From: Ylistrum balloti
Taxonomy: Eukaryota
Length of the DNA stretch: 64,000 nt
Reading direction: 5' to 3'
NCBI RefSeq assembly: GCF_031769215.1
Contig: NW_026782534.1
Location: 310,001 to 374,000, forward strand
Part shown: positions 131 through 26,805 of the stretch, in pieces
How positions within the stretch are numbered: position 1 is the stretch's first letter
How the letters are laid out: each line of letters begins with the position of its first letter
The notes under the pieces: model-generated
What the model saw: only the letters and a program-made list of their open reading frames with translations
Told to the model about the DNA's origin: nothing
Databases searched by the model: none
Translations under genes and position numbers: made by a program

Positions 131-1780
131 CTATACTTTGTTCTTGTATACAGGAGCATTAGATCGAGGCAGTGGTTTGTTTCCCAGGATAATGTCAGCG
201 GCCTTCTCAGCCAGCATTATTGTCGGGCCGTTCAGGTTCCCAGTAACTATATTTGGCATGATAGAGGCATCAACTACTCGAAGATTATCTACACCTAAAA
301 CACGAGTCTGAGAATCCAACACAGCCATCGGGTCACTCTCATCTCCCATTTTACATGTACATGATGGATGATAGGCACTGTCTGCGTAAGCACGGTTAAA
401 GGCATCAATCTCGGCATCTGTTTGACAATCAGGTCCTGGCAACAGCTCTCGACCAGCGCGGAAAGGATCAAACGCTTTCTGTTTAAACACTTTCCTGGCA
501 ACTTTGACACTGTCCCTCATTGTCCTCACATCATATTCTGTAGACAGATAGTTGGCTACAATCTTCGGATGGTCTCTTGGATTTTTGGTTTTCAGCTTGA
601 TGTTACCTTTACTGGTAGCATGCATTGGTCCTGTATGCAATTGGTAGGCATGTTCATCACCAGTTTTACGCCCGTGATCTTTCACAACAGAAGGTAAGAA
701 GTGAAACTGAATGTCGGGGTACTCAAGACCTTCTTCACTATGGACAAACCCACCACTCTCCAAATGTGCGCTGGCTCCATCTCCTTTCTGAGTCAGAAAC
801 CACTGTAGACCTATCCGAATCATATTGTGAGGGAATTTCCACTGAGCAGAATAAAGAGTGATTGGAAGCTTGCATGCCTCCTGTACATACACCTCAAGAT
901 GGTCTTGGAGATTTTCTCCGACACCAGGAAGGTGTTGAACCACAGGAATGTCCAGTGCCTTCAGATCGTCTGCATTACCCACACCCGATAACATGAGAAG
1001 CTGAGGAGAGTTGATTGATCCTCCACTCAAAATCACCTCCTTCTCTGCTCTGATCACCTTTTTTACACCCTTCTGTTCATACTCTACACCCACGGCTCGC
1101 TTGTTCTCAAACATAATCCTCGTGGACAGGGCATTTGATTCCACTGTCACATTGTCACGCTTCATAGCTGGCCTGAGGGAGGCCATAGCAGCACTCCATC
1201 GCCGGCCTTTGTGAATGGTCATGTCCATCAAACCTACACCCTCCTGTTGATAGCCATTCATGTCGTCTGTAAACAGAAAGCCAGCCTGCTGACCTGCTTC
1301 TATAAAGGCCTGATGCAGTGGGTTGTTGGTTTTTCCTCGTGACACATGAAGAGGACCATCACCTCCCCTGTAGTCATTCTCCCCAAGTTCATGGGTCTGA
1401 GATTTTTTAAAGTATGGTAAGCAATCTGCATATGACCATCCCTTTGCCCCAGCCTTCTCCCATCCATCATAATCACCAGCATTTCCACGGATATAGACCA
1501 TGGCATTGAGTGAAGACGATCCTCCCCAGACTCGTCCTCGTGGCCAGTACATGACCCTGTTGTTCATGTGAGGCTCTGGTTCCGTATGGTAGTACCAGTT
1601 GTACTTGTCATCACACAGGTTGTACATGAGGGCAGCAGGCATGTGGATCTTCCAGGTGTAGTCTCTTGGACCAGCCTCCAGAACACACACCTTGTTGTTA
1701 GGATCTGCAGACAATCGATTGGTGAGAGTACAGCCAGCTGATCCTGCACCAATGATGACGTAATCGTAGGTGGATCCAGC
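131..1780 (-). CDS. CHDH: Choline dehydrogenase (GMC oxidoreductase) domain, within the terminal exon of the fusion gene
   Basis: FAD-binding GxGxxG ([12 protein letters not shown]), GMC signature GGSSSLNAM, catalytic His (AYHPSCT) and Asn (GNLNGPT). As recalled, the sequence closely resembles vertebrate CHDH and bacterial BetA. Stop codon at 131-133. Confidence 0.95.
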   Translation of the reverse strand, partial: AGSTYDYVIIGAGSAGCTLTNRLSADPNNKVCVLEAGPRDYTWKIHMPAALMYNLCDDKYNWYYHTEPEPHMNNRVMYWPRGRVWGGSSSLNAMVYIRGNAGDYDGWEKAGAKGWSYADCLPYFKKSQTHELGENDYRGGDGPLHVSRGKTNNPLHQAFIEAGQQAGFLFTDDMNGYQQEGVGLMDMTIHKGRRWSAAMASLRPAMKRDNVTVESNALSTRIMFENKRAVGVEYEQKGVKKVIRAEKEVILSGGSINSPQLLMLSGVGNADDLKALDIPVVQHLPGVGENLQDHLEVYVQEACKLPITLYSAQWKFPHNMIRIGLQWFLTQKGDGASAHLESGGFVHSEEGLEYPDIQFHFLPSVVKDHGRKTGDEHAYQLHTGPMHATSKGNIKLKTKNPRDHPKIVANYLSTEYDVRTMRDSVKVARKVFKQKAFDPFRAGRELLPGPDCQTDAEIDAFNRAYADSAYHPSCTCKMGDESDPMAVLDSQTRVLGVDNLRVVDASIMPNIVTGNLNGPTIMLAEKAADIILGNKPLPRSNAPVYKNKV

Positions 1781-4700
1781 CCCAGATGTCGTGGAAGCAT
1801 TCCTCACCTGTACAGCACTGGTGGAACAGGGTGATTGTCTCCCTCGTGACATTGTGCTGAACAAACGACATTGGACATTGACACTTCCCGGCTTTCTCAG
1901 TTTAGGAAGAGCATTTGGTATCATTTGTTTGCCAGGAGTGGTTGGTGGGTCTTCTAAGATATGATCAATCACATGGTCTACAGTAGGCACCACTAGGTCG
2001 GTGACCCACTTTAGGTCATCTGCAGACCCTACACCTGATAGTACACCAATCTTTTGTATCTTAGCTGATCTTTCAAATGAAAAATCTTTGGTAGAATCGC
2101 CGACTATTACAGTTTTCTCAGGATTTACATTCAGTTCATCACATATGATTTGTGTGCTGTGATCAGGAGACCGTGAGACAGAGTGTGGATCATCTCCACA
2201 GATCATCATATCAACATATTTCAACACACCCAGATTTGTCAAATCTGACAGTGCAAGTTCACGCTTATCTCCAGTACATATTGCTATTTTGATTCCTTTT
2301 CTCTTTAGTGTTTTGAAGAATTTTTTGATGTCCTTGTGAAGTGATTTTGGTTCTTGAAGAAGCGTAGATTCACACTCCTGCCAGACTTTGTTTACAACCA
2401 TCAGAGACTCCTCATACGTCAAATGTTTATGGATCATCTCCACCAGTGACGACCTCACCTCCATGTTAGTGGTTCCATGTTCATTCAACAGCCCATCCTT
2501 TATTTTACTTGTTTGTTCACATATTCCAAGCCTCTGGTGAATTTCTGATCGCAGACCACAAAGACCAGTCGCCTGTTCTAACCTGTAACAAAAATTGAGA
2601 AAATCAATGCACTAACTGACCTCAATTACGATAAGAGAAATCCTGTAGAAATATTTTGATTCATTATATATAACACACTGAGATTGTAGAAATCCTGTTT
2701 ACAATATCCTGCACCCTTTATGTTATACAATGAGATTAGAGAAATCCTGTTTACAAGATCCCACACTCTTTATATAATATACAAAGATTAGAGAAATTCT
2801 GTTTACAATATCTCCCATTCTTTATATAACACACTGAGATTAGAGAAATCCTGTTTACAATATCTCCCATTCTTTATATAACACACTGAGATTGTAGAAA
2901 TCCTGTTTACAATATCTCCCATTCTTTATATAACACACTGAGATTAGAGAAATCCTCTTTATATAACACACAATATCTCCCATTCTTTATATAACACACT
3001 GAGATTAGAGAAATCCTTTATATCTCCCATTCTTTATATAACACACTGAGATTAGAGAAATCCTGTTTACAATATCTCCCATTCTTTATATAACACACTG
3101 AGATTAGAGAAATCCTGTTTACAATATCTCCCATTCTTTATATAACACACTGAGATTAGAGAAATCCTGTTTACAATATCTCCCATTCTTTATATAACAC
3201 ACTGAGATTAGAGAAATCCTGTTTACAATATCTCCCATTCTTTATATAACACACTGAGATTAGAGAAATCCTGTTTACAATATCTCCCATTCTTTATATA
3301 ACACACTGAGATTAGAGAAATCCTGTTTACAATATCTCCCATTCTTTATATAACACACTGAGATTGTAGAAATCCTGTTTACAATATCTCCCATTCTTTA
3401 TATAACACACTGAGATTAGAGAAATCCTGTTTACAATATCTCCCATTCTTTATATAACACACTGAGATTGTAGAAATCCTGTTTACAATATCTCCCATTC
3501 TTTATATAACACACTGAGATTAGAGAAATCCTGTTTACAATATCTCCCATTCTATTATATAACACACTATATAACATTGTAGAAATCCTGTTTACAATAT
3601 CTCCCATTCTTTATATAACACTTTATATAACACACTGAGATTAGAGAAATCCTGTTTACAATATCTCCCATTCTTTATATAACACACTGAGATTAGAGAA
3701 ATCCTGTTTACAATATCTCCCATTCTTTATATAACACACTGAGATTAGAGAAATCCTGTTTACAATATCTCCCATTCTTTATATAACACACTGAGATTGT
3801 AGAAATCCTGTTTACAATATCTCCCATTCTTTATATAACACACTGAGATTGTAGAAATCCTGTTTACAATATCTCCCATTCTTTATATAACACACTGAGA
3901 TTAGAGAAATCCTGTTTACAATATCTCCCATTCTTTATATAACACACTGAGATTGTAGAAATAATTCTTTATATAACACACTGAGATTGTAGAAATCCTG
4001 TTTACAATATCTCCCATTCTTTATATAACACACTGAGATTAGAGAAATCCTGTTTACAATATCTCCCATTCTTTATATAACACACTGAGATTAGAGAAAT
4101 CCTGTTTACAATGTCTCCCATTCTTTATATAACACACTGAGATTAGAGAAATCCTGTTTACAATATCTCCCATTCTTTATATAACACACTGAGATTAGAG
4201 AAATCCTGTTTACAATATCTCCCATTCTTTATATAACACATTCTTTATATAACACATATAACACACTGAGATTAGAGAAATCCTGTTTACAATATCTCCC
4301 ATTCTTTATATAACACACTGAGATTAGAGAAATCCTGTTTACAATATCTCCCATTCTTTATATAACACACTGAGATTGAGTAGAAATCCTGTTTACAATA
4401 TCTCCCATTCTTTATATAACACACTGAGATTAGAGAAATCCTGTTTACAATATCTCCATTCTTTATATTCTTTATATATAACACACTGAGATTAGAGAAA
4501 TCCTGTTTTTCCCATTCTTTATATAACACAATATCTATTCTTTATTCTTTATATACACACTGAGATTAGAGAAATCCTGTTTATCCTGTTTACAAGATCC
4601 CACACAATATCCTACCATTCTTTATATAATACAATGAGATTAGAGAAATCCTGTTTACAATATCTCCCACATTCTTTATATTATACAATGAGATTAGAGA

Positions 4701-7700
4701 AATCCTGTCTCCCATTCTTTATATAATACACAATATCCCACACTCTTTATATATACAATGAGATTAGAGAGAAATCCTGTTTACAATATCTCCACACTCT
4801 TTATGTTATACAATGAGATTAGAGAAATCCTGTTTACAATATCTCCCATTCTTTATATAATACAATGAGATTAGAGAAATCCTGTTTACAATATCCCACA
4901 CTCTGTATGTTATACAGTGAGATTAGAGAAATCCTGTTTACAATATCCCACACTCTTTATGTTATACAATGAGATTAGAGAAATCCTGTTTACAATATCT
5001 CCCATTCTTTATATAATACAATGAGATTAGAGAAATCCTGTTTACAATATCCCACACTCTTTATGTTATACAATGAGATTAGAGAAATCCTGTTTACAAT
5101 ATCTCCCATTCTTTATATAATACAATGAGATTAGAGAAATCCTGTTTACAATATCCCACACTCTTTATGTTATACAATGAGATTAGAGAAATCCTGTTTA
5201 CAATATCCCACACTCTTTATGTTATACAATGAGATTAGAGAAATCCTGTTTACAATATCCCACACTCTTTATGTTATACAGTGAGATTAGAGAAATCCTG
5301 TTTACAATATCCCACACTCTGTATGTTATACAATGAGATTAGAGAAATCCTGTTTACAATATCCCACACTCTACAGTGAGATTAGAGAAATTCTTTATAT
5401 AATACAATGAGATTAGAGAAATCCTTTATCCCACACTCTGTATGTTATACAATGAGATTAGAGAAATCCTGTTTACAATATCCCACACTCTGTATGTTAT
5501 ACAGTGAGATTAGAGAAATCCTGTTTACAATATCTCCCATTCTTTATATAATACAATGAGATTAGAGAAATCCTGTTTACAATATCCCACACTCTTTATG
5601 TTATACAATGAGATTAGAGAAATCCTGTTTACAATATCCCACACTCTGTATGTTATACAATGAGATTAGAGAAATCCTGTTTACAATATCCCACGCTCTT
5701 TATGTTATACAATGAGATTAGAGAAATCCTGTATACATCAACCCACATTCTTTATGTAATAATCAGAGGTAGACCAAAACTGGACACACTTTTGTGAGTA
5801 ACTGAAGATGTATTGTATGAATCAGTTGAGGTCTATAACTGTGGCAAAAACCAGGCTTGTATAAAATGTATGAATTTCAATGTCTTTCTTATTGTTTTCA
5901 TGTCCTGATGTGTGGATATCAATTTTCACACTTTTTGAAATTTTCAATTGTCACCAATTTACTTTCCTTGTATTGAAAGAATAGGAAAACAGGGTACACA
6001 CCTCGAGCAGATTTGGTCTGTCCATTTGCTGTACTTGCTGTGGGCACAGAGGATGGTACCATGGAGATCTAAGATGATCAAGGCAACAGTCGGTACATGA
6101 TTCTCAACACTAGCATACTCATCAGAATTGGAAGATTCCAAGGAATATGGTTCGATCAAGATTCTTTTGTCGTTGGAGTAAGCGTAGCATTCCCTCCATT
6201 GGTCCTCCGGTAGGATGAGGGGCAACAAGTCTTGGACACTTTCTATCACATGACTGGCCGCTGGGTACAAATCATTTGTCTGACCTACACCACTTAATAC
6301 CCCTATATTCCAGCCAAGCTGTGCTGCCTTTCCCATTCCCACATCAGCTTTGGTGTCTCCCACCATGACAGTATCTTCAGGGTTCACACCAAGCTTTTCA
6401 CAGATCATTTGAGCGTTATCTGCAGCAGGTTTTGGGACATTGTTGGGGTCATCACCACACACAATGTGATCAACTAAACCATGGATTCCTAAATCTTCTA
6501 AAAAGTTCTCAGTTCCTTTCCTGCAGTCAGCAGTGCAAACAGCGATCTTTACATTATTGCTTTTTAATATCTTAAACAAAGTGTTAAGGTCGGCTAAAGT
6601 TTTAGTTTCATAAATGCCGTGTCCATCTTCCCAGATGTTGTTCACAATGGCACGACCTTTGACCTCATCCACACCCTCCTGACTGAGAAGCTCCACTATA
6701 GCATCCTGGACCATTTCTGTGGTAGCTTCTGCAAGCAAACCTGGGATTACTCTGTCAGATGTGGTACAAAATCCAATTGTTTCAAATACTTTCTCCTGAA
6801 TGTCTAGTCCGGTGGCTTCTTCCAATCTGAAATAATAAAATTTTTAAAGTTAAATTATTTAAATCCAAATTATGGATCATTTACAATTATCAAGTAAGTA
6901 AATAAGAATTTAACATCAATGGTTAGACACCTACACTATACAAATAGATATACCAATGATTGGGCATAAGTAATTATCAGCTTATGGACATGCATGATAT
7001 GGATGATAAATTATCTACCCAAGATACCTCTAGCTTATAGTTATACAGGTTGGTATTTTCTAAATATACATGGTGAACACTTTATTCTGTATAATAAAAC
7101 ATGCATAAGCATCAAGCCTTTATATAGCTATATATGTATATAAGGAGTACAAAGCGCCATTCACAGGAATTTACACAAATGAGTATACATTGTGTTACAC
7201 TAATGAGTATACATTGTGTTACACTAATGAGTATACGTTGTGTTACACTAATGAGTATACATTGTGTTACACTAATGAGTATACCTTGTGTTACACTAAT
7301 GAGTATACATTGTGTTACACTAATTAGTATATGTTGTGCTACACTAATGAGTACATGTTGTGTTACACTAATGAGTATATGTTGTGTTACACTCATGAGT
7401 ATACATTGTTACACTAATGAGTATACATTGTTACACTAATGAGTATACATTGTGTTACACTAATGAGTATACGTTGTGTTACATTAATGAGTATACGTTG
7501 TGTTACACTAATGAGTATACATTGTGTTACACTAATGAGTATATGTTGTGAACAGGAAACTGAAATATGAACCGGTAATCATAATGTGGATCGCTGACCT
7601 CTGGGATATACATAAGGAAGTAGCACCTTGACCTACTCCTAAATTTTCATTCTTCTTTCCTCATCAATACGTGTTGGATTGCTATGACTTTTTATGAGTT

Positions 7701-9587
7701 TAATACTTGCTTGCCAAAATGTTTATTCATGCATGAAAACAATCAATACTATATGAAGCAACAAATTAGAAAAATGAAAAATGAAAATAAATACAGTAAA
7801 TTTTAATTTTTCCCAATAAATTGTATGTAAGAACACCATTATGCTAGTCTATCTTAATATACTGCTGAGCTTAAAAATAAGTAAGAAAACAGAATATATT
7901 ACACACTATCAAACATGCTAGTCTGATAAAAACCATGAATAAAAAATAAATCTTATAGTTAGAAAAAACAACAAAAATTAGATGTATCTATCCATACACA
8001 ACAGCCAACACTGAAGTTGATTAGTACATTTCTATGTGTATTTACTTAGAGGCTATTTTCCTGGCCCAAGGGGACCACATTGATTGGAAGCATATCAAGG
8101 TGCCGTCTTTGTCGAAAATAACTAGGGATGCCTTCTTCCCGGCATCAGTGGACTTGGTAGGTTTGACACTGTTGATAGTTCTGACTTCTGACAGGATGGT
8201 GTTATGATCTGTTACGGAGCTGTAGGTGGCGTAACTGCCACGAACGCCTGTAAGATAGACACAGCATGACAGACGGGGAAAGTGTGGCTCGTAGGGAGAC
8301 ACACAACATGTTGACAACAACTGTCCACACTACAAAAAACAATTCTGTTACAATAAATATGATAATACGTCCCACCAAATGAATGGCTTTGGTATCAGCC
8401 AGTAACACATAATGTCTGCCTATTTGCAGTGCTACTAGAATTTCAATTTAGAATCAGAATTCCAATTTATTGGATTAACAGTGAGAGGTATAAAACACAG
8501 TTTTAAAATGAGTTTTTTTAGATATTCATGAGATTTAAAATAAATTTGCCACAAAATATTCCAGGTATGTTTAATAGGAATATTGTGGTTTCTAAAATGT
8601 AGGTGTAATGAACCGTGATGACAACTACCTGAAAACTTAAAAAAGACAAAAATATTTTGATAATCAGGCAACTTAAGAATAAGGGACCATACTGCATCTA
8701 ACATTTTGTGTTAGAGAGGTTATCATAATTGAAGTGAACTATATTTTGTAGCATTATTTGAAAAAGAAGCCTTCCAATTTAAAAAAAAAAAACAGTGAAA
8801 TACTGGCATATTTTGTCATACTCTTGAAATATCAATACTCTTTAATAGAAAACTGTCACATAGTTATCGATTTCATTATCATCCACCTATATTGTTAAAT
8901 AATCATTTATCTATATTTGCCCGCCACCATCCCAATACAACAGTACTAGACTGTCAATGTATCAGTAATTATGTGGCTATAAAACTGGGATTGATTCCAC
9001 GGTATTAAGACACTGCTCTTCCCAATACTAGATCAGTTTTCTCTCAGTATAATACAAATTCAACTTACAGAAGTGTAGATTGCCTAAAAACATTGTTCAT
9101 AAATATAAAATAATTCAATATTTTCTATAGGTGATTTTGGTTGATATTATTCGAAGATACCCCTCTGTTAAATCTTCTCAGAAACTGGCCCTTATCAGAT
9201 TTCATAGGATCTCCTATGAAGTAATGAGCTAATGACTGTCGTCTCATGTTTCTGTCAAAAGTTGACATTTAAATCTTTCAAGGAGCAAACATTTATAGGT
9301 AACAGCATAAAGCAATAAATAAAATATTTATAAACCATTAAATATATCAATTATATAACCACACAAGCAATATCATTTATATAACATTATAAACAATTGG
9401 ATATAATAGGTATAAAATCGTAAACAAATAAATATTATATGAGAACTGTACAGACCAACACACCTAGCATAGTTTGCAGTTTGGGGTGGTATGCCGATAT
9501 ATTCTTTGAAGCATTCGATGCAGTGAAGATTCTGCTGAGACAACCGGGACGAAGCAGTCCTATACAGGTCTTCCTAACAGTTGCCAT
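131..9587 (-). CDS. CHDH: Mitochondrial tandem-HAD phosphatase / choline dehydrogenase fusion protein, 1200 aa, 4 coding exons (9587-9464, 8247-8046, 6826-6002, 2582-131)
   Basis: Exons joined by hand at GT-AG sites with phases 1, 2, 2 give 3603 nt, or 1201 codons including the stop. N-terminus [24 protein letters not shown] is Arg/Ser-rich and lacks acidic residues, like a presequence. HAD1 has [17 protein letters not shown] and VGDTKAD. HAD2 has [17 protein letters not shown] and VGDSTKD. The C-terminal part has [43 protein letters not shown] and [13 protein letters not shown], typical of CHDH/BetA. The symbol applies to the C-terminal domain only. Confidence 0.88.
1940..6090 (-). CDS. HAD-superfamily domain 2 (degenerate paralogue of domain 1), split by intron 6001-2583
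   Basis: Motif I is DLHGT (6069-6055) instead of DxDGT, motif III is SRSPD instead of KP, and GDSTKD is retained. It aligns by eye with HAD1 (LEEATG/LEQATG, IAVCTAD/IAICTGD, GVLSGVG in both). Confidence 0.85.
2620..5760. repeat. 52-bp minisatellite of about 60 copies in two sub-arrays, filling the last intron of the HAD-CHDH gene
   Basis: Unit GAGATTAGAGAAATCCTGTTTACAATATCTCCCATTCTTTATATAACACACT at about 2800-4560. Variant ...ATATCCCACACTCTTTATGTTATACAAT at about 4600-5740. The 52-bp period was checked at 3061/3113. Confidence 0.97.
6230..8140 (-). CDS. HAD-superfamily hydrolase domain 1 (phosphoglycolate-phosphatase-like, catalytic motifs intact), split by intron 8045-6827
   Basis: Motif I DKDGT at 8113-8099, motif II T (VCTAD), motif III K (PKPAAD, about 6432-6418) and motif IV GDxxxD (VGDTKAD). 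Confidence 0.88.
7180..7550. repeat. 24-bp minisatellite, about 15 copies (intron)
   Basis: Unit TAATGAGTATACATTGTGTTACAC, period 24 (7201/7225). It generates the spurious ORFs 7112-7396 and 7134-7439. Confidence 0.95.
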
Positions 9588-10990: not shown

Positions 10991-12369
10991 GTCCATTTTT
11001 TGAATATTCAATAACCTAGCTTATTAATATTCAAAATATGATTAACGTATGTATACAGTGGGTGTAGAAGAGCGCGTATGTGTATTTTAATTTTGATAAT
11101 GATGATGAGGATTGATATTGAATCGATGATGGCATGTATAATTAATTTATAAAATGATGATATATTGATGTATCTAAGCGTGTATATTAATTACTGTATC
11201 TTGTGTAATATGTATGATTAGGTAAAAATCTTGCAAAAATGATATATATACATATATATAAAAAAAACTGTGTGGCGAGCCCTTTTTATATTCCGTAAGT
11301 ATAACATATATTATCCATATAATTTAGCAGTTCAGGCGAACAACCCCAACAGAAAAAAAAGTAAAAACTCTTTAATAAGCTCGATCATATGTTCAAAATG
11401 CCAACGATGACTTTATGTTGGAGTGATTTTCCGATATCTTACTGTGTATGTGCATTGTAATATGAGTGGAGTACTTATAAATGTAATGAACGACAACAGA
11501 AGGCCTACTGTACACACTCTGTTTTACAACAGGGAAATAAGGGTTTATTTGTGTAGGAATGAATTTGAATTTCCAAGCTGCTGAATACTAGGCATGAGTC
11601 CAAGAACTTATAACAAGCCGATTGTTGAAATGAAAAATTGTGATGAGTTTCTATCCAGAGACGTCTCTGTTTCGATCTAATATGAAATAGAAACGATTTT
11701 AAGATTCTATTTATCACTTATAAAGATATGATTTAGATACTATTGGAAAAGTTCATGAAAACTGGCAACTTGAAACATATTTTTGTTGTCTCTTGATAAC
11801 ATATACGACCACACTACCAGAATAGCTCCATGGATGTAGCGTCTGACACACTATGTATCCCAAAGAGGACAGCAACAACCTAATGCCAATTTTTTTGACA
11901 GTCACGTTACATACATTTTGTTATGCTTTCTCCGTGCATGATCACAGGAATAACGTGGCATTTCGCAATACCTTTACACCTCTGTACAAAGTCGTTACAT
12001 CCCGGCCATCACGTACTTTGGCCTATAGAGGATGTAACTTATGCAATTACATGGTCTATTTGTAACATTTCTATGAGCATCAATTAGACAGCGAGACGAG
12101 GGGGCTGAAATATTTCATTCCTGCACGTATATAGTGGACGTAAAACCCACTGAATACAACCCGTGTCAGGCCAACAGTTCACTTCAGTTCTTTTATTTCC
12201 TTGATCAAAAAGCACATCAGAGGGGAAGTACGATTACACATACATACAAAAATGTACAGATTGAGGGAGAAACAAACAGTTGAAAACTGGCTAATGATAT
12301 ACAATCAGACATTAGAACATTGTTATAAACTTACTTCAGAGATCATTAAAATGAAATTATCTTGAACTT

Positions 12370-14199: not shown

Positions 14200-15690
14200 T
14201 ATTAATAAACAAGGGGCCGAATGGGCCTGCAAGGCTCAACTTGTATATATATACCAGCCAAATACCATGTCTCTAGGTCTTTTAGTTCATGAGAAGAAGT
14301 CATTGAATATAAGTCAAGGTCATTTCTTTTCACAAGCTTTGTCGGGCTGCATCTTAGGAACATACCAAACGTTTTTGGACTTCCTCCTAGGAACATACCA
14401 GCCAAATATTATGCCTCTAGACTTCTTCGTCCAACAGAAGAAGCTGTTTAAATGCTGTAACAAATTTGATCCTTGTGACCTTGAATATAGGTCAAAGTCC
14501 TTTCTTTTCACCACTTTGTTGGGCTTCATCCTAGGCCAAATGTCAAAACATTTGATCCATTGGTTATTGAAAAGTTGTTGCAAGTAAAAAGTTGATGCCA
14601 GAGAATGCACCACCGCATTTTTGTATTGGCTATATAACCATGATCATAATACAATTGTAAGGGCTAAATAAAATTAAGGTAAAGTTTGATTACAGATCTC
14701 ACGACATATACATGCATACTTTCCTAGCTTTCTTCACCCTGAATCCAGATTGTTTGCTAGCCCCAACAGTGTATCTTCATCTGAACCTACAGATAGATTG
14801 AATATTTCATTTGTGTATCACTAAGACTGTTGAATTCAATTTGGTTGTTATGTCTTTAGCAAACGTTTAGGGTCTCATATAGCACTTAATCCGAAACAAG
14901 TGGGCCATGGCCCTTAACAGTCATCTGACATTGAAGGAATGAATGGATAAACCACTGAATACACTGATGGTGGTCAGACAAATCTGATGAATTCAAATTT
15001 TGAACATTCCTTGTAAGTATCAGAAACTCATAAATGGTTGGTTCTGTGCAAGAAAAAAAATTGCACCATCATGTTACAAAACAAAAGGCACAATAGGCCT
15101 GCAGTGCTCACCTGGTATACATAAACCAGCCAAATATCATGCCTCTAGGCCTTTTAGTTCATGAGTAGAAGCTGTATAAAGGTTTTAACAAATTTGACCC
15201 CTGTAAACTTGAATATAAGTCGGGTTCATTTCTTTTGGCAGACTTCATCCTAGGAACATACTAGCCAAATATCATGCCTCTAGGCCTATGAGTTCATGAG
15301 AAGAAGTTGTTTAAAGGTTTTAACAAATTTGACCCCTGTGACTTTGATTCTAAGTCAAAATAATTTCCTTTCGCAAACTTTCAAACTTTGTTGGGCTTCA
15401 TCCTAGGAACATACCAGCCAAATATCTTGCCTCTAGGCCTATGAGTTCATGAGAGAGTTGTTTAAAGGTTTTAACAAATCTGACCTCTGTGACCTTGAAT
15501 ATATGCCAAGGTCATTTTCTTTTGCAAACTTTGTCAGACTTCATATTAGGAACATAACATCCAAACATCAAAACATCTGCTTAATTGGTTATTGAGAAGT
15601 TGTTTGAATGAAAAAGTTGACGCTGGTCACCAGACGCTGCACCACAGCATAAGCTCACTTGGCCCTTCAGACCAGGTGAGCTAACAACGG
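14200..15690 (+). mobile_element. Composite non-autonomous Helitron/Helentron-like interspersed repeat(s) with internal degenerate tandem units
   Basis: Starts AAACAAGGGGCCGAATGGGCCTG. Repeated ACCAGCCAAATATCATGCCTCTAGG...TTTGACCC/TGACCTTGAA units. Ends in the hairpin AGCTCACTTGG-CCCTTCAGA-CCAGGTGAGCT (about 15652-15682). The superfamily is inferred from architecture only. Confidence 0.5.

Positions 15691-20494: not shown

Positions 20495-26805
<6,311 letters not shown>

Follow-up and report, generated by a model that had tools for sequence, protein, structure and literature searches.

On the minus strand of the window, a stretch of 64,000 nucleotides of Ylistrum balloti DNA (NCBI RefSeq assembly GCF_031769215.1, contig NW_026782534.1, positions 310,001 to 374,000), lies a gene whose predicted product is one long mitochondrial protein with two phosphatase-like HAD domains and a choline dehydrogenase (CHDH). 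Once imported, this composite precursor is probably split into two enzymes by an internal cut of the mitochondrial processing peptidase (MPP), in the manner of yeast Arg5,6 and human ACAD10; we put the probability at roughly 55 %. Cleavage is favoured because the junction of the two modules resembles an import signal and has a cut motif that is kept across animal phyla. Mitochondrial import and the internal cut are both inferred from sequence. The new observation is the MPP+ICP55 consensus, conserved at the HAD-CHDH junction across animal phyla.

The predicted spliced product has 1200 amino acids encoded by four exons with canonical GT-AG borders throughout, and its domain order is a presequence-like N-terminal start, HAD1, a degenerate HAD2, a disordered linker and CHDH. 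Exons 1 and 2 were located by tblastn of scallop orthologues, splice sites and translation, exon 1 also by composition. Exon 1 (9464 to 9587) contains the start codon at 9587 and the presequence-like segment, which is part of the 54 N-terminal amino acids, while exon 2 (8046 to 8247) holds the end of the N-terminal extension and motif I of HAD1, DKDGT (8113-8099). The remaining HAD1, an acidic HAD1-HAD2 linker (6219-6088) and the degenerate motif I of HAD2, DLHGT (6069-6055), are located on exon 3 (6002 to 6826), and Pfam HAD_2/Hydrolase matches were obtained on the ORF 5959-6825 of this region. Exon 4 (131 to 2582, acceptor AG 2584-2583) encodes the remaining HAD2, the linker and the complete CHDH up to the stop codon 133-131. 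Its ORF (2488-131, minus strand) runs over 785 codons without a stop from HAD2 via the linker across the whole GMC/CHDH domain, with Pfam matches to HAD_2 (amino acids 23-149), GMC_oxred_N (241-531, E=4.6e-59) and GMC_oxred_C (625-760, E=2.2e-36). A read-through artefact of the gene model was rejected, as HAD2, linker and CHDH are fused inside a single exon and ORF. The sole public sequencing run covering the exon 4 region, of a type not recorded as RNA, yielded short contigs over 1-2640, several of which diverged from the window and are probably derived from paralogues. Contigs of this run extended past the exon 4 border, with loose ends beyond 2589 and 2599 that are absent from the whole window, exon 3 included.

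The folded CHDH starts at 1733 to 1768 (minus strand) with the strand beta-1, YDYVII, and the FAD-binding GAGSAG (1750-1733), as placed by Pfam and AlphaFold2. The assignment to choline dehydrogenases is based on both GMC domains, the N-terminal GxGxxG FAD fold and the score of the orthologue P0001, not of the window ORF, which reached 787.5 bits on NCBIfam TIGR01810 betA against a cut-off of 732.1. In the HAD-IA motif I, DxDxT, which provides the nucleophile/general-acid pair, HAD1 conforms with DKDGT, whereas HAD2 departs from it by a His in place of the second Asp. No NCBIfam equivalog cut-off was reached by the HAD module.

The linker of 58 amino acids (1769 to 1942, minus strand; amino acids 598-655 of the spliced protein) had been quoted in the earlier note as a presequence-like segment without Asp or Glu and rich in Arg, Ser and Thr. 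The quoted sequence was an exact match to the minus strand of the window at 1942-1769, and the description held: zero D/E, 8 R/K and 16 S/T (28 %) were counted, whereas the remainder of the protein has 12.7 % D/E, 10.9 % R/K and 12.3 % S/T. An acid-free, basic and Ser/Thr-rich segment of the iMTS-L type, judged by composition and not by an iMLP score, is thus positioned exactly at the junction of the two modules. The longest acid-free run of the 1200-aa protein, amino acids 596-656 (61 aa), contains the linker, and the runner-up is the N-terminus itself, amino acids 1-54. Among 20,000 shuffles, a longest run of at least 61 residues occurred with P = 0.046, and with a second run of at least 54 residues with P = 0.003. 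The HAD1-HAD2 linker as internal control was acidic (9 D/E in 44 aa). Low acidity was also retained more widely: in 73 fusion relatives the 45 amino acids before beta-1 had on average 3.9 % D/E, the CHDH domains 11.2 %. Scans for amphipathic helices, with a crude substitute scoring, placed the moment of the linker only at about the 95th to 96th percentile; they discriminate weakly, because the best helices fall in folded domains. Two 25-aa windows within CHDH likewise passed the filter for acid-free and basic segments. In the AlphaFold2 model of the 785-codon ORF, the linker (amino acids 180-237) had pLDDT values of 26-33 and no secondary structure between the confidently predicted HAD2 and CHDH, so that a cleavage site in it would be accessible.

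Two R-2/R-3-like sites before the FAD-binding motif had been proposed. Both are present, and the position of the consensus proved to be conserved across phyla. The distal CRLFST (1853 to 1870, minus strand) fits the MPP+ICP55 consensus RX(F/Y/I/L)|(S/A)(S/T) (PMC8847149); in the alignment it falls into the distal R-x-[FY]-S-T column seen in other phyla. The proximal VRNAST (1790 to 1807, minus strand), 12 amino acids before beta-1, is of the R-2 type (R-N|A-S), lacks an aromatic residue and is specific to scallops, among whose paralogues it is kept. The proximal motif shared across the phyla is degenerate in the window copy (QSPCSTS); the R.FSTS of the relatives is compatible with the R-10 pattern of MPP/Oct1 (PMC8847149). 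A pair of motifs with a spacing of about 15-25 aa is typical of lophotrochozoan CHDH fusions. The pattern R-x-[F/Y/L]-[S/A]-[S/T] was found within the 45 amino acids before beta-1 of the FAD fold in 65 of 73 fusion relatives, with 2.4 expected from composition-preserving shuffles; these 65 are not independent events because the sequences are phylogenetically related. The density in this segment was 25 motifs per 1000 aa versus 0.07 per 1000 aa in all other parts of these proteins. Twenty-six of 28 named lineages scored carried the motif, and among the fusion relatives that have it are molluscs, nemerteans, an annelid, a flatworm, amphioxus, hemichordates, crinoids and a copepod. In a MAFFT alignment of 41 sequences, the only linker residues with a majority consensus were R..ST (distal) and R.FSTS (proximal). 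Since the motif columns alone, conserved from molluscs to deuterostomes, reach this level, selection acts on the motif rather than on the remaining linker. A functionless low-complexity linker that obtained its composition by chance is hardly credible: the modest improbability of the acid-free run in this one protein would by itself leave some room for it, but not the frequency of the motif, its conserved columns and the conserved low-acid character.

Conservation of the motif has to be weighed also against a fusion that remains intact, with the linker serving as a flexible tether. Its presequence-like character would then reflect an internal MTS-like import aid bound by Tom70 or a constrained relic, and R-x-F-S-T would have a role other than cleavage, e.g., in phosphoregulation. 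The reading frame across the linker is kept in all relatives, which places the fused translation product itself under selection. R-x-x-S/T is a basophilic kinase consensus as well, so the motif could have another role. Uncleaved internal MTS-like segments that aid import are widespread (Backes et al., PMC5881500). For tethering or Tom70 binding, however, composition matters and not a fixed pentapeptide, and the motif is the only conserved part of an otherwise free-running linker. It matches the consensus of MPP and ICP55, and related motifs occur at the equivalent site in the N-terminal extensions of stand-alone CHDHs. We consider an intact fusion unlikely.

According to Friedl et al. (PMC8734313), internal cleavage by MPP depends on a strong N-terminal presequence. 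The N-terminal 54 amino acids of the predicted protein are acid-free, have 7 R/K and include a RIFTA motif, again judged by composition, and in nearly all full-length fusions HAD1 is preceded by a basic N-terminal extension, about 40-90 aa long, whose first part contains few acidic residues. Such a presequence would drive the import into the matrix. MPP would then meet the unfolded linker and cut after R-x at CRL|FST, followed possibly by removal of the Phe by ICP55; an additional cut may take place at VRN|AST. This would yield a HAD-HAD protein on one side and, on the other, CHDH bearing a short N-terminal tail.

The linker could also serve as presequence of a CHDH-only product made by alternative expression, either from an internal start codon, from an internal promoter or by splicing of exon 1 to a cryptic acceptor. 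The in-frame Met codon at 1924 noticed earlier is present (1922 to 1924, minus strand), and a peptide beginning there is basic, acid-free and ends in CRLFST. Stand-alone paralogues of Argopecten and clams begin inside the region aligned to the linker, and NCBI models include N-terminally shorter isoforms X2 for Pecten and Mizuhopecten. In Pecten maximus, HAD-less paralogues splice exon 1 to tatcag|GT within the HAD2 tail; the window shares this hexamer, and its tatcag|G (2034 to 2040, minus strand; AG at 2036-2035) is a candidate cryptic acceptor. Against these observations stands that the pyrimidine tract of the window candidate is poor, unlike that of the Pecten paralogue. The Met codon has a C at -3 and an A at +4, a weak start context, and is situated about 1.8 kb into the mRNA. 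It varies even among scallops: among the scallop relatives examined only one other, Mizuhopecten (P0004), has it, and many lineages are free of Met in the 70 amino acids before beta-1. The dual start suggested in the earlier note was dropped as a conserved mechanism for this reason. The open frame, conserved despite a variable linker length, favours translation through the linker. A CHDH-only product of alternative expression is altogether quite improbable.

Stand-alone CHDHs give indications on the origin of the linker. The N-terminal extensions of those of venerid clams, scallops, echinoderms and fishes align with the linker and have motifs of the type R/K-x-[FYL] at the equivalent position; the strict consensus was present in 9 of 27 stand-alone CHDHs, with 0.8 expected. 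The relation to a CHDH targeting peptide, as put forward before, is supported by this alignment, but the proposed direction, with the linker as the ancestral targeting peptide of CHDH, appears reversed in the phylogeny. At least four times, stand-alone enzymes, including those of scallops, clams and echinoderms, branch from within fusion clades of the CHDH tree, so the fusion looks older within bilaterians. Thereby the presequences of the stand-alone enzymes look derived from the linker, and not the linker from presequences, within this group. HAD-CHDH may even be an MPP-processed polyprotein since early bilaterians, present in at least seven animal phyla, with a linker repeatedly recycled as presequence of stand-alone CHDHs after HAD loss: in paralogues of scallops and clams, in eleutherozoan echinoderms and possibly in vertebrates. 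We offer this history tentatively, with the odds somewhat against it; if true, a targeting signal arose from an internal cleavage site and not the other way round. A second search using only HAD2 and the linker returned close relatives alone and no wider taxonomic spread. Neither the supplements of a mouse heart N-terminome nor a literature search provided an experimentally determined N-terminus for vertebrate CHDH.

To our knowledge, very few composite mitochondrial precursors with an internal MPP cut are known. The animal cases retrieved by our literature search were limited to ACAD10 and a TOP3A isoform that is processed; a HAD-CHDH fusion was not described in it, and the papers on mollusc CHDH contained neither a protein size nor a mention of a fusion. 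Cleavage of HAD-CHDH would add a phylogenetically broad animal case to the precursors cut internally by MPP. Repeated losses of the upstream module that spared the linker amount to natural experiments. The combination of R-x-F-S-T with an acid-free, disordered junction is a simple signature that could serve in the screening of other fusion proteins. For the metabolism of the osmolyte betaine in marine invertebrates, cleavage would decide between one tethered machine and two enzymes at 1:1 stoichiometry.

The closest known systems are composite mitochondrial precursors with an internal MPP cut, among them yeast Arg5,6, Atp25, S. pombe Rsm22-Cox11 and Etp1 (PMC8734313, PMC5063612); the precedent of Arg5,6 had been cited correctly (PMC8734313). 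With the Arg5,6 type, HAD-CHDH shares a presequence, here a presequence-like start, followed by two enzyme modules, and a presequence-resembling junction with an R-2 or R-3 MPP motif, the latter with ICP55, that is conserved among the fusion homologues, a feature of MPP-processed composite precursors. The enzymes are different ones, and the distribution is bilaterian-wide in animals rather than fungal. Arg5,6 and Atp25 are proven to be cleaved; for HAD-CHDH this is inferred. In human ACAD10, a presequence is followed by a degenerate HAD, then by a kinase and a disordered linker holding two MPP-consensus cuts, and last by the ACAD flavoenzyme (PMC11342911); its cleavage was established by western blot and proteomics (PMC11342911). 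Both are animal mitochondrial proteins (HAD-CHDH putatively so) with an N-terminal MTS (putative in HAD-CHDH), an upstream HAD with an incomplete DxD motif and a C-terminal flavin dehydrogenase, which is released in ACAD10 and would be released from HAD-CHDH. The MPP-consensus sites in the disordered linker of ACAD10 are about 18 aa apart, comparable to the spacing in lophotrochozoan CHDH fusions. ACAD10 differs by the kinase between HAD and linker and by its flavoenzyme, an acyl-CoA dehydrogenase instead of a GMC oxidoreductase; the two linkers are compared here by layout. The catalytic domain is that of stand-alone mitochondrial CHDH, such as vertebrate CHDH, and of bacterial BetA. Some stand-alone enzymes, including those of fish, share R-x-[FYL]-[SA]-type motifs before beta-1, but in HAD-CHDH this region is internal, behind about 600 aa of presequence and two HAD domains.

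The gene lies on the minus strand in four exons (exon 1, 9587-9464; exon 2, 8247-8046; exon 3, 6826-6002; exon 4, 2582-131) with canonical GT-AG borders throughout, and its spliced product has 1200 aa. A basic, acid-free N-terminus of 54 aa is followed by a first phosphatase-like domain (HAD1), an acidic linker of 44 aa, HAD2, the linker of 58 aa and a complete choline dehydrogenase (CHDH). The window is scallop DNA; its best relative was Ylistrum balloti, with 91 % identity across the last exon. The exon 4 open reading frame matched HAD_2, GMC_oxred_N and GMC_oxred_C in Pfam. With NCBIfam, the CHDH part of the orthologue scored 787.5 bits against the betA equivalog cut-off of 732.1, while the HAD domains reached no equivalog cut-off. 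HAD1 carries motif I as DKDGT (8099-8113, minus strand). HAD2 reads DLHGT (6055-6069, minus strand), degenerate with respect to DxDxT, thus the second HAD is probably no phosphatase; it resembles the one-Asp HAD of human ACAD10. A gene-model artefact was ruled out as origin of the fusion, since HAD2, linker and CHDH are covered by one exon and one stop-free open reading frame. Intron 3 (2650-6000) is filled by a unit of roughly 45-50 bp (gtgtgttatataaagaatgggagatattgtaaacaggatttctc...) repeated in tandem, and intron 2 (7112-7439) holds a second short tandem array, read as repetitive ORFs on both strands. A low-complexity ORF of 521 aa on the minus strand (24070-25635) is probably an exon of a neighbouring gene; its ending resembles the start of an NYN/PIN RNase domain of the N4BP1/KHNYN/ZC3H12 type.

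The description of the linker in the earlier note was confirmed in sequence and coordinates (1942-1769, minus strand), including the in-frame Met codon (1924-1922) and the Arg motifs CRLFST (1870-1853) and VRNAST (1807-1790), all on the minus strand. The linker contains no Asp or Glu, eight Arg/Lys and 28 % Ser/Thr. In a protein with 12 % Asp+Glu overall, no acid-free run is longer than the 61 aa of the linker run, and the N-terminus comes second with 54 aa; shuffling gave P = 0.046 for the linker run and 0.003 for both. As physical proxies for a presequence, such measures are crude. An AlphaFold2 model built from a 41-sequence alignment assigned pLDDT values of 26-33 and no secondary structure to residues 180-237 of the exon 4 ORF, exactly the linker, between a confident HAD2 helix (170-177) and the first strand of the CHDH FAD fold, beta-1 (240-246).

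Fusions of two HADs with CHDH (about 1150-1235 aa) occur in bivalves, gastropods, a cephalopod, nemerteans, an annelid and a flatworm, fusions with one HAD (about 870-925 aa) in amphioxus, hemichordates, crinoids, a copepod and a EukProt entry labelled Rmarinus. Linker length and sequence vary greatly between phyla; the frame was kept in every case. Within the linker, majority consensus in the MAFFT alignment was restricted to R..ST on the distal side and R.FSTS on the proximal side. In the distal column, CRLFST stands beside RRLFST, the form seen in Haliotis, Aplysia and Tubulanus; at the proximal column the window copy has the degenerate QSPCSTS. VRNAST, nearer to beta-1, is conserved in scallops as their own motif. 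Within 45 aa upstream of beta-1, R-x-[FYL]-[SA]-[ST] was found in 65 of 73 fusion proteins against 2.4 expected from per-segment shuffles, the sequences being related, and in 26 of the 28 named lineages scored; its density was 25 per 1000 aa in this segment versus 0.07 in the rest of the same proteins. Chance is hardly credible as an explanation. The published consensus for the mitochondrial processing peptidase (MPP) followed by ICP55, RX(F/Y/I/L)|(S/A)(S/T), is the same as the linker motif, and R.FSTS also matches the R-10 pattern of MPP/Oct1 (PMC8847149). A composite precursor cut internally by MPP is the best-supported reading of these sequences, with a probability of roughly 0.55. An uncleaved tether or an import-helping iMTS-L, with another role for the motif, would account for the linker composition; however, it fails to explain why the sole conserved element is a pentapeptide identical to a cleavage consensus, and we regard it as doubtful.

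CHDH-only isoforms from the same gene appear improbable, even though such routes and cleavage could coexist. The dual start proposed earlier was not borne out: Met 1924 is shared only with Mizuhopecten among the scallop relatives examined, its codon has a C at -3, a weak start context, and many lineages lack any Met in the 70 aa upstream of beta-1. Splicing of exon 1 to tatcag|G at 2036-2035 is a conceivable route, but this acceptor is weak in the window gene. At one Pecten maximus locus of a HAD-less paralogue, examined at DNA level (LR736848.1, 23.3 kb), a 1.35-kb intron separates exon 1 from the last exon, which is entered at tatcag|GT within the former HAD2 tail (11440-11460 of the locus). 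No HAD exons were present between the two exons, and an assembly gap (500 N, 14784-15283) lies outside the gene. Since the hexamer also occurs in the window gene (2034-2040), a HAD-skipping isoform is conceivable there. The locus holds three tandem HAD-less CHDH genes (674, 642 and 647 aa) inside 23 kb. These copies (P0012, P0016) form a separate clade with a 587-aa enzyme of Argopecten and deviate at several CHDH positions conserved elsewhere. The NCBI isoforms X2 of Pecten maximus (P0002) and Mizuhopecten (P0004) begin within HAD1 at MVQDA/MCQDA; the linker is present in them, and both the N-terminal presequence and motif I of HAD1 are missing. Such isoforms, if real, would either not be imported or rely on internal signals.

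Both linker motifs are kept in the HAD-less Pecten paralogues, and N-terminal extensions of stand-alone CHDHs align with the linker, and several bear a comparable motif in the corresponding place. KYNLSTS and KNEFSTS of clam enzymes correspond to KQNFSTTS of fusions, R-x-[FL]-x-V of urchins and starfish to ARSFSTS of crinoid fusions; fish enzymes have YRCFS[AT]. Judged by these alignments, the linker hence shares ancestry with sequences acting as, or ending, CHDH N-terminal extensions. On a maximum-likelihood tree computed from 44 CHDH domains and rooted only at its midpoint, at least four changes between fused and stand-alone states were required. Stand-alone CHDHs were nested inside Pectinidae (support 100/100), beside Mercenaria and Mactra fusions (100/97) and inside Ambulacraria adjoining crinoid fusions (99/95 and 94/83); fish enzymes adjoined a long-branched copepod, an unreliable placement. 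Nesting within well-supported taxon clades is independent of the midpoint root. For the ancestral targeting peptide suggested in the earlier note, the polarity is probably reversed, as stand-alone enzymes nest in fusion clades: within bilaterians, a change from fusion to stand-alone is more likely.

Internal cleavage by MPP would proceed as follows. The N-terminal presequence would drive mitochondrial import, MPP would cleave the disordered linker at R-x| before the chain folds, the exposed Phe might be trimmed by ICP55, and a HAD-HAD protein and CHDH would result. A basic N-terminal extension, acid-poor at its start, was present in nearly all full-length HAD-CHDH proteins. The interpretation in the earlier note, taken as a whole, is partly supported; its polyprotein reading is plausible and has gained the backing of cross-phylum motif conservation. 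Neither the HAD-CHDH fusion nor its processing is described in the papers retrieved. Yeast Arg5,6 is a composite precursor with an internal MPP cut that requires a strong N-terminal presequence, and the iMTS-L at its junction is conserved in all fusion homologues (PMC8734313). Atp25 is a composite precursor with the same cutting behaviour (PMC5063612). Human ACAD10 combines an N-terminal MTS, a HAD with incomplete DxD and a disordered linker that is cut at two sites of MPP consensus, so that a flavin dehydrogenase is released (PMC11342911). The processing proposed for HAD-CHDH would correspond to the behaviour demonstrated for Arg5,6, Atp25 and ACAD10.
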